A DNA stretch of 64,000 nucleotides. Origin: Paragordius varius (Eukaryota; Animalia; Nematomorpha). Location of the stretch: assembly GCA_964247055.1 (NCBI GenBank), contig OZ176050.1, positions 12,152,001 to 12,216,000 on the forward strand, written 5' to 3'. A program made the position numbers and the translations under genes. The number at the start of each line of letters is the position of its first letter. Position 1 is the stretch's first letter. The notes under the pieces were generated by a model, which did no database searches, was not told the origin of the DNA, and saw only the letters and a list, made by a program, of their open reading frames with translations. Of this stretch, positions 6,281 through 61,200 are shown in pieces.

Positions 6281-7358
6281 TAATTATATATGGAATCAAT
6301 CAGCAAAAATTATATAATTTATTATAATATAATATTTCGATTACTACAAGTAATCTTTGTCAAACGTAAAAATAAAATTAAAATATAAACTAAAATTTAA
6401 ATTATAAAGTAAAAATATTTAATGAAACTAAAAAAACATGTGTGTATTGTTAATAAGAAAAAAATTTGTAATATTATTAATATTGTTAAGGTCTTTCTTT
6501 CTATTCATTATATTCCCTTCTTTGTTAATATAAAAACTTTCTTTCAATATTCTTTTTGTTTTATTTTCTTCTGTATCGACAACTTCGGCATTCCAGTCTA
6601 TTTTATGTTTACATTTAAAGGCATGATATGCCAAGGCCGAATCATTAGTTTTATTCTTGCTAACTGCTGTTTTATGTTCTTTTATCCTAACATCTAATCC
6701 TCTTTTTGTTTGACCAATGTATACACTGTCGCAATCTTGACATTTAATTTTATATATTATACACTGAGAATTAGGATTCTTTTTCTGTGAATTTAATAAT
6801 TTATAGATATTATTTAATGGTTTAAATATTATTGTGTATTTCTCTTTAAGTATTTCTTTGATTTTGTAACTTACGGATTCATAGAATGGTATTATAATTT
6901 TCTTTTTGTTATTATCGTTGTAAATTTTTTTAGGTTTTGAGTTTAAAATTTTGTTGATGGCGTTAGTGATTAAATTTTGTGGGTAATTATGTTCTAATAA
7001 TTTTTTTACTATTTCAGATGTTTGCGAGGTTCTTTTCTCTATACTATTAGGAATTAGTAATGTTACAGAAGAAAATAAAACAAAAAGAATATTGAAAGAA
7101 AGTTTTTATATTAACAAAGAAGGGAATATAATGAATAGAAAGAAAGACCTTAACAATATTAATAATATTACAAATTTTTTTCTTATTAACAATACACACA
7201 TGTTTTTTTAGTTTCATTAAATATTTTTACTTTATAATTTAAATTTTAGTTTATATTTTAATTTTATTTTTACGTTTGACAAAGATTACTTGTAGTAATC
7301 GAAATATTATATTATAATAAATTATATAATTTTTGCTGATTGATTCCATATATAATTA
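6281..7358 (-). mobile_element. Penelope-like element (PLE) 3' remnant with GIY-YIG endonuclease and an inverted copy of its 3' end
   Basis: Minus strand, disrupted: LLEHNYPQNLI...PFYESVSYKIKEIL...YKIKCQDCDSVYIGQTKRGLDVRIKEH...SALAYHA...HKIDW...KRILKESFYI...MN. The 295-bp arms 6281-6575 and 7064-7358 appear to be exact inverted copies. Confidence 0.9.
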
Positions 7359-8416
7359 ATTTATTATTGAACCAAATTTATACTTAAAACAATTGGGATA
7401 AATTGTTAAATTAAAGGAATTCGATCATGAGTATTATCATTGAGGTTTAATAAAGTCTACATGTACAAAATTTTATTTAGAAATAATAACTAATTATACA
7501 AATATGGTCCAGTACGATTATAACCTAGCAATTAATCCACAAATAAATTATTAGTGGGATTTATAATACATTTTGAATTTTGACCATTTTATATCCCTAT
7601 TTTGTAATGAAAGTAAACAGATGTTCATTTTCTTAAGTGGTTATTTTTAAAATGTATATCCATAACCGGTTACATCCAAAATTATGCGCCACTTTAAAAC
7701 AAACAAATGATTGACATAATGAGGTAAATATCAGAATTTTTAAATATAGGAATGTTAAAGTAATTACCAGGGCACGTAACTCCATCGGTTAAGCCGTATT
7801 TCATGATTTTTGCGATTTCATTTTTATCATTTCGGTCAATCTTACTAATCTTTTTATTTATAAATAATAATTTTTTACATCAATTTTAGAATCATCAAAA
7901 TGCCATTGATTTTCCACCAAATTCTCATGGAATAGTAATGAACCAACTAAGATCCAATGAATAAAACTTTTCATGGTTGTTTTGTAATAATAACTTAAAA
8001 AATGCTAAAATAAATTGCGTAAAAAATTAATAATAGTGTTTTATGCACGCTTTTGTGTTCGCTTTGTATGATGGGTTAGGGTTATATGCCTTTACAAATA
8101 ATAAAAAACAATGAAAAAGACGCTAACTCACGTCCATTTGTTTATATAATAAACTTTTAGTAAAACATATTGGGAAAATGGGGGAAAATGCAAAAATTGT
8201 GCATTAAATTTTCAATCTGAGATTCCATATGCAAAGAAGATCAACTCTAATTTCCTTATCATAAACCGATTTTTTTAATGATACATTATTCAATTTATTA
8301 AATTTACAGTTTAACCATGCATCTTGCGACGGATTTTAAATGATTGAAAATAATGGATTTGTAGCTCTTGGCAAAAATCTTTATAATTTACCAGATTTTA
8401 TGGATTACTGCATACC

Positions 8417-55464: not shown

Positions 55465-56228
55465 CCGGTTTATTTTATCCAGTTATTCAATTGTTGTGCC
55501 CAGGAACGTTTTATACTGTCCAATGATACGGGTTTTAAATCTACCCACAGCCCTTGAAATCAATTAAGGAGTATCGATTTGGCCTAAGGAATATAATAGC
55601 TTGGATTGTAGCATACGATATTCTATGTATATATAAATAATAAGGATGATGATTATACCGTTAAAGGTAAATTTAGACCTTACAGAGACTTTTTATAGAA
55701 AGAGGAACAATACAATGACATCGGGTAGACCAAATGTCCAAAAAACTTATGAAATCTTACCACAAACACAAACGTATCAGCCATTGAATCGAATGTATCG
55801 TCGATACCTTGAATACTGGTAATGATTGGCTACACAAAAAAGGTCTATAATACTATTACTCAGTTTTTAAATCGGATATTGATCTTATGGTACGGTATAA
55901 CCGCATTAATCCAAACGCTGGTCAGAAAATTGGCAAAAACCAAAAAATGTCGTCACGCAAAGCTCACAGAGCACAAAGCATATTAGTCAATTATTCGGCT
56001 CTTATATATTCTGTCATTTATATCATATTTGTGTCACCTAATGTTGTGTTGTACATAACACGTCGCAATCTCCGTATCCTACTCTTCAAAGATTTCCAAC
56101 TTTCTTATGATCTTTCTGCGATTGGGAATGTTTTAGAGGTGGCTTATGGTGCTTTTATCATGTACATTTACATTATATTGGATCATAATATGATATATCA
56201 AGTGCGGAGATTATTAAGTTGTAAATAA
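55465..56228 (+). pseudogene. Degenerate paralogue of the GPCR 3' half (ECL2 to C-terminus)
   Basis: Homologous to ~46050-46872, with frameshifting deletions in 55465-55860 and near identity in 55861-56228. No 5' half was found. Confidence 0.9.
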
Positions 56229-56514
56229 TAATTTCATTCTAAGGTGTGAGGCAAAAAAATGTGTTACTTTACAAATTTATGAATTGTTTTTTGATTTGAT
56301 AAATGTATAAATATATGAGCCAAATATCGAATAAAACTATTAATATTTATTTTTTTACAGTAAAATATAATTGTTACTAATTAGAAAGTATGTCCAATGT
56401 TTATATATATAAATTAAATTTATGTTTTATAATTATAAACACATGAATAATCAATATAACTAACTATTTGATAAACGATAATCAACACCTATGTGAAACC
56501 CTTCGACAATAGTA

Positions 56515-56557
56515 ATCGCAGACTAGTTTCGTGCTTGTTAGCACTCATCAGTACGAC
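56515..56557 (-). ncRNA. Minimal type I hammerhead ribozyme (identical copy on the minus strand)
   Basis: Its reverse complement is identical to 57153-57195; predicted cleavage is at 56521. Confidence 0.88.
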
Positions 56558-57152
56558 ACAACTATTTGACTTCGGGTTTTCACATATCGATTTCGTATAT
56601 ATATCCAACTTTGCAATTTTGGTATAAATGCAGTTGGTTATAAGAATTTAAATTATATTTAATGGTATTTATGAAAATTAAACTGAAAATTTGAAAATAA
56701 ACTGAAAACTCTAGGGGCGAGCCTAGATTTAGAGTATAGCTACTTAGGGATTTCATAGAAATCAATTTAATAACTAAGAAGCACTCTATTTTGATAAGAA
56801 ACATAAGATAAATATGATATTGTAATGGTAAACAACGGATTGGTTATGTTTTTGTAATAACAGTTGTTAAAATCCGTAATATAACGATAAAGGATAATTA
56901 AATAGAATTATTCTTATCAAAATAGATTCCTTCTTAGTTATTAAATTGATTTCTATGAAATCCCTAAGTAGCTATACTCTAAATCTAGGCTCACCTCTAG
57001 AGTTAGTTTTCAGTTTATTTTCAAATTTTCAGTTTAATTTTCATAAATACCATTAAATATAATTTAAATTCGTATAACCAACTGCAATACCAAAATTGCA
57101 AAGTTGGATATACATACAAAATCGATATGTGAAAACCCCAGCAAATAGTTGT

Positions 57153-57195
57153 GTCGTACTGATGAGTGCTAACAAGCACGAAACTAGTCTGCGAT
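57153..57195 (+). ncRNA. Minimal type I hammerhead ribozyme
   Basis: GTCGTA CTGATGA GTGCT-AACA-AGCAC GAAA CTAG TC TGCGAT. The catalytic core is intact, with a 5-bp stem II, palindromic loopless stem III (ACTAGT) and 6-bp stem I including two G-U pairs. Predicted cleavage is after GUC at 57189. Confidence 0.88.
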
Positions 57196-57885
57196 TACTA
57201 TTGACGAAGGGTTTCATATATCGTTTATAATTTCTATTTATACTTTCATTTAATTATCCTTTATCGTTATATTACGAATTTTAACAACTGTTATTACAAA
57301 AACATAACCAATCCGTTGTTTACCATTACGATAATCAACACCTTTTTTCGGAATGTCTTAACAAAATTAACATATATGAAGAGCATCTTAATAAATTTCG
57401 AAGAAATATAATCATGTATTAATTTCAAATATTTTTTTCTAAAAATCCATTTACTATTTTCCATATGTCGTTCAAGGTCAAAATTGTTTAAGTAGCGTGA
57501 CAAACAATCGTATATTTAACATCAAAGTCGGTTCGGATTAAGAAAACATCCAAGATTATGGAGTTTTGTAAAAATCTATAACCTAATTTTAAAAAGATAA
57601 AGTGCATGCTAAATTTTTATATACTGAAATAAGTTGTGTACGCAATATAAATCCTTTAATTATACAGATTGAAGCGATATATTTGTTTTAATAAAGATAT
57701 TAATTTAGAAAAAAAGAGAGTTTTATATATTTTGCTGAATGCAATTGTATCACACTATATTTATTTCAAAATATATAAAATTAACTTAAATTCAAAAATA
57801 TCACATTTTTGGTATACTAAATCAAATGTTATTAGTCATTTCATTATTTTTAGATATAAAATTAATTAAGTGAGATCTATATATA

Positions 57886-58127
57886 CCATTTCAGTTCAAA
57901 TTCATCCTTGAACAATTTAAATTCACCTTAAAAATAAAATGTGTTTTCGAACTAATATAACTCATCATTAATATAAAATATATCTTTATGGCATTTCAGT
58001 ATTATTAATTCAAAACATATTTTATTTTTTAAAAATACATTAAAATATAGGTAATTTTTAATCTTAAAAACATATAATTTATTTAAGGGTGAATTCGAAT
58101 TGTTTAAAATTGTTGAATCATAAATGG
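57886..58127. mobile_element. MITE with CCATTT-type TIRs and TA TSD (a related fragment lies at ~48300-48360)
   Basis: TA|CCATTTCAGTTCAAATTCATCC ... GGGTGAATTCGAATT...ATAAATGG|TA. Confidence 0.55.
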
Positions 58128-58205: not shown

Positions 58206-61200
58206 TTATAATTCGTCGTAATGCAAAGAGTCCGCATCCAAATCTTGTCCATCACTGTAATCAATTGAGCCATTTAAGATAGCTGGGCATTTTAGACATT
58301 TACTTTCATTCTTACCATAACTAATATATTATAACACAAATCTTTAATATATTATACATTATATATGACTAACATATATAAAAACCTTCATTTAATTCTA
58401 ACTAATATTAATTTGAGAGCTGATAATATAATCAAATCGAATTGGAATCCATGCAAAACAATCCGCATATAAAATTAAAGGGACATACACATTATTATTA
58501 AATTTTACCATATTGTTTCAAAAATAAATAATTTCATCAGCGGTTTTATACATTAATTCTGAGCAGTTAAATAAATTATGTTTTTAGATTATTATAAATT
58601 GGTTCCACGTAAGTAGCAAAAAGGTAAAGCAAAATGCATTGTATTATAAAAGTCATATTTAATATGATTTAAACAATTGTTAGCTGGTTATTATAACAGA
58701 ATATACAGAGTGTTGAACCTATAAATTAATCCCTAAAATGTAATTTAGTTATAAATCTAAAATTTTACACATTTTTTTTATAAAAGAAAAGCCAATAACA
58801 TGTTTACCTTAAACACGTGTGTCCAATACATTGGCAACACGCATCATGAAACCAACGGAACTTCGAAGCTCCCATACTGTAACAAGTCATACGGCATTTA
58901 TGTAATGACATACATTGAGCCATATATAAAACGGTACAGTTTACAGTGGGTGTTTTTTGTTCATCGGTGTCGTGTGGTAAAGATTTTTCATTTAATCCAT
59001 CGTCCCTATTTATCAAAGTTTTGTCAAACTTCACCTTTTCTTGAAATTGGTGGGAGAATTCAACATTAGGATCGGACAGGAGTAATTTTGATATTTGATC
59101 CAACTTTTTGGAGGGGCGGTTTAATTTTTCATTCAACAATGGTGATGATGTTTTTGTTTTTACAATTTCATGCGTATCATTAGCATGGGCTTTGTGATTA
59201 GAGTCAGGTAGCAATTCTACAAAAAAATATTCTAAAATATTTTGATAATCATATAGAAAACTCAAAATAACAGCAATATGTTCTCTAACAGCAAACATTC
59301 GGGTTCAAAATTTCGATAAAGGGGTCACACCAATACTAATATTCAATAATGTGTGATTTAAACGAGATATTTACACGTACGTTAGTGGATAGAGTTAAAA
59401 TCATATCCATGTATGGATTACATATATCTGGCATCTAAAAAGAAGCTGGCGAGTTCTGCGGTAAACTCTACCATTAAATGTTTATTTCGAAGCGACAGTT
59501 TTTGGGGAACAGTCAAGCACTATTTCTTAATTTATCAGATTTCGGAATTTACCAAGATAAGAGGTATATGCCAAACCATACTTATCCAAATTAATCAATA
59601 AGGTTCTGACTAGTCCGAGTTTGACGTGAAAGGGAGGTACAATTAGTCTACCCATATAAAGTATGGTCGTGTTCTTATACTTTATTTTCTAATAATATCT
59701 TTTAGCCCTGGGCTTGTGTTATTTGCAATTCCACCGCTGCCTAAAAAAGCAAATGTCCAAAGGTATTTTACTACTCTTTACACGAAATATTAAAAATACG
59801 ATTCAGATATTCGCAAATCAAATATCAAGCTATAGAAAGAGCAAAATGCTTAGAAACACTGCATTGTGTAATACAAAAAAAACCATAAAAACTTATCAGA
59901 AATTCTGAAAAAAAACAACAGATATTTTCAGGACGAAAAACATTGGAAAAAAGCTTTGTAAAATGAGGTGTTTGAAAATTATGAAGAAAATATCATGTAT
60001 TAAAAATATGCTTCCAATCACTGTTTTTTAAATATCGCATCACAAAGCAAGATCAAGAGGGAATAATTTTTTTTCTTTAAAGCAGATATATTCGTGGTAA
60101 AAATTGTCTTTATTTTTATTAATGCAGCAGGATATGACTATCTTTTCTGTATTAACCAGTTCACTATGTCAACACTGATTTCTTTTAACCAAACTCACGC
60201 GAAACTCGTTTCGAATTTAATAGCTGGAATCATATATCCATTGTTTAAAACCTAATATGCATAATCCATAATAAATTATTAAGATATTTGCCAAGAGCTA
60301 CAAATCCATTTTATTTCAATCATCTAAAATCCGTCACAACATTTACAGTCAATTATTATATATTGTAAATTTAATAAATTGAATAATGTAAATGTTTTAG
60401 TAATTAAACTTATTGCAACCAAAGGTCTTCTGAATCAAAATATTTATGTATTTTAATAAAACTAAGATTATATATGAAAATTACTACACAAAATAAATTT
60501 TTTCGTAATATATATTTTAATAAGGCTTGTGCTAGTCACGACAATCGGTAAATAGAGATATATATTTCCATTATTTGTGTTGAAGTGATAAATAAACTTT
60601 TAATACGCAATATTCATATACGCCCGCGTGAAAATTTTTCCAAAAACATAGCCGGCGGGAAATAAAGATTGACCACCCCTGATCTAGATGAACCAAAAAT
60701 TGATGTTAAAGATGCCTACAACCGTAATGTAGAAAAAAAATATATCACCACTCGAGTACCCTGATCAAGAATGATGAAGCATCTATCATTAAACGCCCTT
60801 TCTCATATATCAAGGTTGAAATCAAAAGTCACAAAAAACCGGCTACAATTTTTGTAATGTTAATTTAAATAAAGAAGATTCGGTACTTGACGCGCCTCTT
60901 TTAAATGTATAAATAATATATATTTATCGCCTGAAGTATAAATTATCATTATTTAACAATTAATATATTACAATTCAAAGTCAAAAAATATCATTGAAAA
61001 AGTTGTTTAACCTGTTTCATAAATATTAAGCGTTTGACCAAGCTGTATTTTGAATTTTTGCCAATCTGGTGTCAAAATTTCGAGGTCTTCGTATATTGGA
61101 TATCTTCTAAATTAAAAATATATAACTTAAATATGGTCCATCGGTTTAATGAATCAGCTTCTTCAGTTAAAACATTAAATAATTGATGCAGGGAATTTGA

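Follow-up and report, generated by a model that had tools for sequence, protein, structure and literature searches.

Paired, inverted hammerhead units in Paragordius varius point to Penelope-type insertion of a non-coding element

We analysed a 64,000-nt stretch of the genome of the nematomorph Paragordius varius (contig OZ176050.1, positions 12,152,001 to 12,216,000 of the forward strand; this whole stretch is called the window), which carries at window 56491-57327 an insert made of two head-to-head arms of one 440-nt unit, each arm with a hammerhead ribozyme. A repeat search over window 56200-57600 resolved the insert into two segments and two linkers. Segment P (56911-57220) is the reverse complement of 56490-56800, in four blocks that are 96-99% complementary, and segment Q (57240-57333) is reverse-complementary to 56818-56911 at 95%; linker L2, 19 nt at 57221-57239, separates P from Q, and linker L1 is 17 nt long. 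On the plus strand the order is rc(P), L1, rc(Q), P, L2 and Q, where rc denotes the reverse complement. The plus arm reads P-L2-Q and the minus arm Q-L1-P, each being nearly one unit opened at a different point; taken together, P, Q and the linkers close into a circular period of 440 nt. The inverted arm has its 3' end at unit position 310, against the left copy of a target-site duplication (TSD); base-level reading of its other junction places the 5' end near unit position 317, and the arm retains part of L2 with a 12-nt deletion. An earlier reading of this DNA from its letters alone (the sequence-only reading) had described two permuted, back-to-back monomers of about 440 nt, bounded as a whole by an exact 16-bp direct repeat and devoid of open reading frames (ORFs). 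The repeat search upheld that description: the inverted repeats lie where it had put them, both junctions are present, and the 16-mer, ACGATAATCAACACCT, has exactly two copies in the window, abutting both outer ends, with 0 matches in shuffled sequence. No reading frame in the insert exceeds 74 amino acids (aa). The window arms terminate in ...CCATTA and ...TCATATA, neither of which is an A-run; the local G+C content is 27%, with 25-33% across the window. The features of the insert are collected in Table 1.

Table 1. The insert, its arms and its ribozymes, in window coordinates.
Feature	Position	Strand	Evidence and remarks
Left TSD copy, ACGATAATCAACACCT	56475..56490	.	Exact repeat; other family loci have different TSD sequences
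Inverted arm: unit ~317-423, L1, then 1-310; crosses the Q-L1-P junction	56491..56910	-	blastn to the unit, 93.7% and 94.7% identity
Type I hammerhead, inverted arm	56511..56562	-	Rfam Hammerhead_HH9, 26.7 bits, E = 3.3e-4; predicted cleavage between 56521 and 56520
L1, 17-nt linker from unit end to next unit start	56801..56817	-	Same 17-18-nt spacing and sequence at same-strand junctions of at least 14 other loci
Direct arm: unit 1-417/418 (P-L2-Q)	56911..57327	+	Family query; ends at the usual tail-bearing 3' end, adjoining the right TSD
Hammerhead hairpin, extended helix I of ~30 bp closing the ribozyme	57126..57220	+	Direct repeat D1 and inverted repeats I4/I5; closing stem of the circular fold
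Type I hammerhead, direct arm	57148..57199	+	Hammerhead_HH9, 26.7 bits, E = 3.3e-4; predicted cleavage after GUC, 57189/57190
'Tail', ~30 nt between the family's two preferred 3' ends	57301..57327	+	Window insert: right end only
Right TSD copy, 16 bp	57328..57343	.	Exact repeat

The two hammerheads are letter-identical over 52 nt, and by inspection all core letters (CUGAUGA, GAAA and GUC) are present in both arms. Helix II is formed by GUGCU and AGCAC, helix III is the palindrome ACUAGU with space for only 1-2 bp, and the predicted cleavage site lies at 279/280 in unit coordinates. In its letters, the window hammerhead has the usual shape of animal type I hammerheads (Rfam clan CL00010), which, where helix III is short, are believed to cleave in dimeric form within multimeric transcripts (PMC4209133). 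At the Rfam gathering level the whole window gave no match, the hammerhead being seen only with a permissive threshold. That the arms have diverged while their ribozymes remain identical, as the sequence-only reading pointed out, is correct; taken alone this identity is not significant, for at 5% divergence about 0.1 of all 43-nt stretches would be identical by chance. Among the related copies elsewhere in the genome, non-majority letters make up 1.4% of hammerhead columns versus 3.5% of other columns (Fisher p = 1.4e-8, a value that overstates independence, the copies being related). Energy folding of the 52-nt ribozyme, as a single molecule and as a dimer, paired CUGA with UAGU instead of giving the catalytic fold, and therefore says nothing on ribozyme activity. 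When the unit was folded as a circle, it reached -77.3 kcal/mol versus -55.6 +/- 4.8 kcal/mol for shuffled sequences (z = -4.5, 52% paired), mostly because of the long helix I. Since each strand of the insert holds only one sense ribozyme, the locus cannot excise a unit-length RNA; it is a dead, decayed footprint of an old insertion.

The unit belongs to an abundant family. In the genome searched (110.6 Mb in 44 contigs), the direct arm as query gave 84 scored matches of 418 candidates, with 83-93% identity, and the exact hammerhead core string was found at 129 sites versus 0 for a reversed control. A structural map was drawn from 26 distinct loci placed on the unit. The sequence-only reading had staked its case on recurrence of the Q-L1-P junction and of tandem monomers elsewhere in the genome, and both are there: same-strand Q-L1-P tandem junctions are common (at least 14 loci, including L002-L007 and L009-L013), same-strand hammerheads are spaced 443-446 nt apart, and L012 comprises as many as 2.45 units, with arms of up to 1080 nt. 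The window locus itself has no same-strand hammerhead pair. At 21 of 21 composite loci, the window included, the inverted arm abuts the direct arm in the order (-,+) with the 3' ends outward. All 16 of the 16 close hammerhead pairs are likewise in (-,+) order, for which random orientation would give a probability of ~2^-16 or lower; opposed hammerhead pairs 100-700 bp apart had already been noted in 2014. At 16 of the 26 loci the complete composite is framed by a TSD of 12-18 bp, with a sequence that differs from locus to locus. For this reason the 16-mer in the window is taken as duplicated target and not as part of the element, which is how the sequence-only reading had seen it.

Comparison of the two window arms with each other and with the family bears on whether they arrived together. 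The arms differ at ~5% of 404 shared positions, a difference that can be counted in favour of two independent insertions, the second landing inverted exactly at the 5' end of the first, and in so abundant a family nested events are possible. Against such a coincidence stands the single intact 16-bp TSD around both arms, with no inner TSD, as well as the distribution of the differences. Both arms carry the family majority letter at 375 of the 404 shared positions; they have 9 non-majority letters in common, 4 of them nearly unique to this locus (unit 96, 139, 149 and 408), and private differences number 10 in each arm, or ~2.5% per arm. Together with the invariant, outward-facing and abutting arrangement of all 21 composites, this makes two separate insertions very improbable. 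The two window arms are one insertion event that has decayed since, and ~2.5% per arm is compatible with an intact 16-bp TSD. Over all loci, differences between arms of the same locus comprise 267 private changes versus 43 at positions that are also variable in other family loci. As within-locus differences are mostly private, the arms of a locus were alike at insertion; mosaic, heterogeneous templates, which we considered as a source of the unequal identities between arms, are rejected on the same count.

The ends of the arms are not scattered over the unit. Two sites are preferred as 3' ends in the family, unit ~384-392 and ~418-423, the latter extending to 437 when L1 is counted. Of the 20 composite loci that could be scored, 18 pair an end at unit ~412-437 with an end at ~345-398 (384-392 in most cases), and seven more loci in the genome match table show the same two-kind pattern. 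In these loci the stretch of ~33 nt between the two sites, the tail, is borne at one end only. In the window the right 3' end is at unit 418 and the left at 310. The 5' ends of arms cluster as well: six loci have them at unit 313/314, with the window (~317) and L021 (~319) nearby, and further clusters occur around unit 1 and at unit 88/89 (six arms). The cluster at 313/314 lies just past the hammerhead hairpin and looks like reverse-transcriptase stalling at that hairpin. In addition, the 5' ends of the inverted arms of L005, L017, L025 and L030 are found at unit 282, 283, 287 and 290, past the predicted cleavage site by 2-10 nt. These ends could reflect cleaved templates or stalling at the three-way junction, in what is a small sample of four.

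Two further observations concern individual family members. L010 (G000:C7:9318222-9321654) and L018 (G000:C4:5135473-5138874) are differently structured insertions in the same site, ATATT[A/T]TGGATAT, which belongs to a small repeat with inverted ends; the coincidence may reflect a target preference or a hotspot. In L012 (G000:C4:11694271-11697695), two full monomers are 98.6% identical within one TSD-bounded insert, but a third, incomplete monomer and the inverted arm match them at only 93-96%, which suggests later internal duplication or gene conversion.

The layout of the family directed attention to Penelope-like elements (PLEs), retroelements whose insertions are described as showing 5' truncation and partial tandems (pseudo-long terminal repeats, pLTRs), often with a 5'-truncated copy lying inverted next to them and with a tail of 30-40 bp, in many cases at a single end (PMC8557442). 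In work with a purified PLE protein, both DNA strands were nicked and extended, and reverse transcription started at two adjacent internal RNA sites, the spacing of which defines the tail; the proposed template is a transcript with several element copies (PMC11167929). The P. varius genome contains several PLE lineages with reading frames that join a reverse transcriptase to a C-terminal GIY-YIG endonuclease, with open frames of 788, 758, 727, 708 and 868 aa. L039 has RVT_1 and GIY-YIG in a single frame, and in L032 GIY-YIG lies over the Pfam cut-off; for some of the copies the Pfam scores are marginal. In at least six places an inverted, truncated copy of a coding PLE abuts a longer copy, which is the same head-to-head layout as that of the unit.

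Some of these PLEs have hammerhead-like motifs of a variant type just downstream of the ORF (L038:4253-4281, 6738-6766 and 7432-7460; also L043, L050, L053 and L056). The motifs come in two lineage-specific forms, in which TTGACAAA or TTGAAAAA replaces CTGATGA, plus an extra base; hammerheads of this U3-A8 type agree with variants described in 2014 (PMC4209133). A PLE remnant is also present in the window itself, where a 225-aa frame at 6431-7096 (minus strand), with GIY-YIG at 6515-6763, is a 3' fragment of a Penelope-like ORF and matches residues 568-788 of the 788-aa PLE frame located at G000:C1:4914348-4916711 with 96% identity. Another PLE fragment, 240 bp from the L018 copy, was considered as a partner of that copy and rejected, being outside its TSD and a separate element.

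We consider it highly probable that the window insert arose by one PLE-type retrotransposition of a non-autonomous, ORF-less hammerhead unit, namely a non-LTR retrozyme, with both target strands primed. We infer every step of the following course of events. An RNA exceeding one unit in length would serve as template, whether transcribed from tandem copies as a multimer or made by rolling-circle copying. Both target strands would be cut by a PLE reverse transcriptase/GIY-YIG endonuclease, with nicks staggered by 16 bp, and each 3'-OH would prime synthesis of complementary DNA (cDNA). The first cDNA would start at the usual tail-bearing site, unit ~418, and run back to unit position 1; the second would start internally, at the 3' foot of the hairpin (unit 310), and cross the L1 junction into the preceding unit as far as ~317. 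The two cDNAs would then be joined 5' end to 5' end, and gap repair would produce the 16-bp TSD. This course of events needs a template at least ~2.2 units long, or a circle; a monomeric linear RNA cannot yield this layout, as the sequence-only reading had noted in setting aside simple twin priming of a single linear RNA.

The same reading had gone further and proposed that a circular or multimeric template was copied twice, in opposite orientation, into one target. The data agree with the double copying, although the circle is not required, as a linear transcript longer than one unit suffices, and the layout is standard for PLEs. A template that was specifically a covalently closed 440-nt circular RNA, reverse transcribed by rolling circle from both target strands, would explain the presence of both junctions, P-L2-Q and Q-L1-P, the arms above one unit elsewhere (as in L012) and the likeness of monomers within a locus at insertion. 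The better-than-shuffled circular fold also agrees with it, and animal retrozymes are known to accumulate as circles (PMC7229834). However, a linear multimeric transcript, as in the published PLE model (PMC11167929), accounts for the same data. The clustered 3' ends at two sites and 5' ends near 1, 88/89 and 313/314 suggest defined starts or stalls and do not discriminate between circle and multimer, and no arm ends exactly at the cleavage/ligation site. A specifically circular template is an improbable variant of the retrotransposition proposed here.

Mobilisation by a PLE enzyme is what we infer from the insertion footprint together with the presence of PLEs in the genome. Read as a product of PLE-type retrotransposition, the element would be an animal non-LTR retrozyme, a term for non-coding derivatives or parasites of PLEs. 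Several results weigh against this account. The hammerhead score of 26.7 bits is below the HH9 gathering score of 52, a low value that follows from the reduction of helix III to a palindrome, which is deleted in the alignment. The 3' end of the left arm at unit 310 is atypical, since tail-less ends in the family lie mostly at 384-392. Among 18 PLE loci, which represent part of the PLE lineages in the genome, blastn with a word size of 7 revealed no autonomous PLE that has sequence in common with the unit. The sequence-only reading's expectation of an autonomous PLE sharing segment P thus failed at these 18 loci, none of which gave a meaningful match, and its wider claim that the element relies on PLE reverse transcriptase is left with the insertion signature and the resident PLEs in its favour and this missing partner against it. 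The hammerhead-bearing PLE lineages have another ribozyme variant, with a U3-A8 core and a helix II of 5-7 bp, and in nine other PLE loci Rfam detected no hammerhead.

Finally, the centre junction of the insert, 56910/56911, is bridged by none of the read contigs listed. This gap is one of two points that favour an assembly fold-back artefact, the other being that tandem and inverted PLE structures are known to trouble assemblies (PMC8557442). The read evidence consists of short, DNA-like contigs of public runs, which break inside the repeat; the stretch was found in no RNA run. A 383-nt contig spans the left flank, the TSD and 46 nt of the left arm with 0 mismatches, so that the left junction is bridged by a contig independent of the assembly, which may nevertheless come from the assembly's own sample. 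Contigs from two samples cover the right junction, one of them with 8 differences and 2 gaps, but on the element side the coverage amounts to only 28 nt, short of the 31 nt required. Over the insert, contigs pile up to hundreds of times the flank depth, as one would expect of a repeat, and the left flank is single-copy in the genome. No flank-to-flank contig representing an empty allele was present among the joints listed for the four runs, 40 further joints lying outside that list. An artefact would give identical mirror arms, but the arms here differ by 5% and are circularly permuted; 20 other loci have the same layout, and an assembly of 44 contigs suggests long-read data. A palindrome made at the DNA level, such as a foldback transposon resembling a miniature inverted-repeat transposable element (MITE), is contradicted by the variable outer ends and truncation points of the family, which has no fixed terminal inverted repeats. 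Artefact or DNA-level palindrome, either origin has very little to recommend it next to a single PLE-type retrotransposition.

Beyond the insert, the window holds an exon of a twisted-gastrulation (Tsg) homologue at 58804-59298 on the minus strand (Pfam PF04668, E = 4.4e-27), and the hammerhead insert lies ~1.5 kb beyond the 3' side of this exon. A second very high-copy repeat occupies window 57872-58000 and beyond. Its summed contig depth is above that of the hammerhead element, it shows many loose ends and small back-joints, and a similar string is present in the right flank of L021.

The window locus is a clean example of a known insertion type, with a layout that is standard for PLEs and not special to this locus. 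As judged from its letters, the element would be a non-LTR retrozyme by structure and a non-autonomous user of the Penelope integration pathway by footprint. Animal type I hammerheads in AT-rich tandem units of 150-450 bp are classed as non-LTR retrozymes (PMC7229834), and these have been argued to derive from PLE pLTRs (bioRxiv 10.64898/2026.07.22.740005). The argument in that preprint proceeds from co-occurrence and pLTR similarity, on which alone the link between retrozymes and Penelope has so far rested; tails and inverted arms were not examined there. The footprints described here, by which we mean priming on both strands, the one-sided ~33-nt tail and the abutting inverted arms, might then be the first structural evidence that animal retrozymes integrate by the Penelope machinery itself, and the arm ends at unit 282-290 might mark cleaved or circle-derived RNAs as templates in vivo; we put this forward tentatively and with some doubt. 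In a study of anole PLEs, ribozyme-cleaved RNAs were not seen as templates.

In this family, a retrozyme whose hammerhead is canonical has left the footprint that coding PLEs leave, and the family is a clean, natural data set for the poorly understood integration of Penelope elements, offering dozens of short, TSD-bounded insertions with starts, stops and junctions at base level. It shows that the tail is nearly always one-sided and that the 5' ends of cDNAs pile up at the foot of the ribozyme hairpin. Such regularities could guide work with PLE enzymes in vitro and studies of retrozyme mobilisation. For annotation, inverted hammerhead pairs are to be taken as single events and not labelled MITEs or assembly errors.

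Short, non-coding repeats with a type I hammerhead are also known from schistosomes and newts, as SINE-like (short interspersed element-like) or satellite repeats whose weak, palindromic helix III is thought to act as a dimer in multimeric transcripts. The P. varius unit resembles these in being a short non-coding repeat with a weak helix III, but differs in sequence and unit length. A further likeness is to metazoan non-LTR retrozymes (Cervera and de la Pena 2020, PMC7229834), with which the unit has in common the type I hammerhead with a tiny palindromic helix III, an AT-rich, ORF-less unit whose 440 nt fall within the range of 150-450 bp, same-strand tandems, TSDs longer than 4 bp and a self-paired RNA fold. 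Unlike those retrozymes, its loci are mostly composites of 0.3-2.5 units with an inverted arm and not long tandem arrays; inverted arms are not mentioned in that study. Circular RNA is the functional hallmark of metazoan retrozymes, whereas the present family is known from DNA sequence.

With PLE architecture the family shares all four signatures: partial tandems, an abutting inverted and 5'-truncated arm, a one-sided ~33-nt tail and TSDs of variable length. It departs from PLEs in that the unit has no ORF and no detectable sequence in common with the PLEs examined, and has a canonical C3-G8 core where the genome's hammerhead-bearing PLEs have U3-A8; the tail-less end in the window, at unit 310 instead of 384-392, is a further departure. 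LINE-1 twin priming offers a last parallel, since there too both target strands prime on one RNA, giving a 5' inversion within a single TSD with the 3' ends outward. However, the insert has no poly(A), the enzyme class is different, and the arms overlap almost fully, which calls for a template longer than one unit. Moreover, twin priming is an occasional accident of LINE-1, whereas extension of both strands is a property of the PLE's own protein (PMC11167929).

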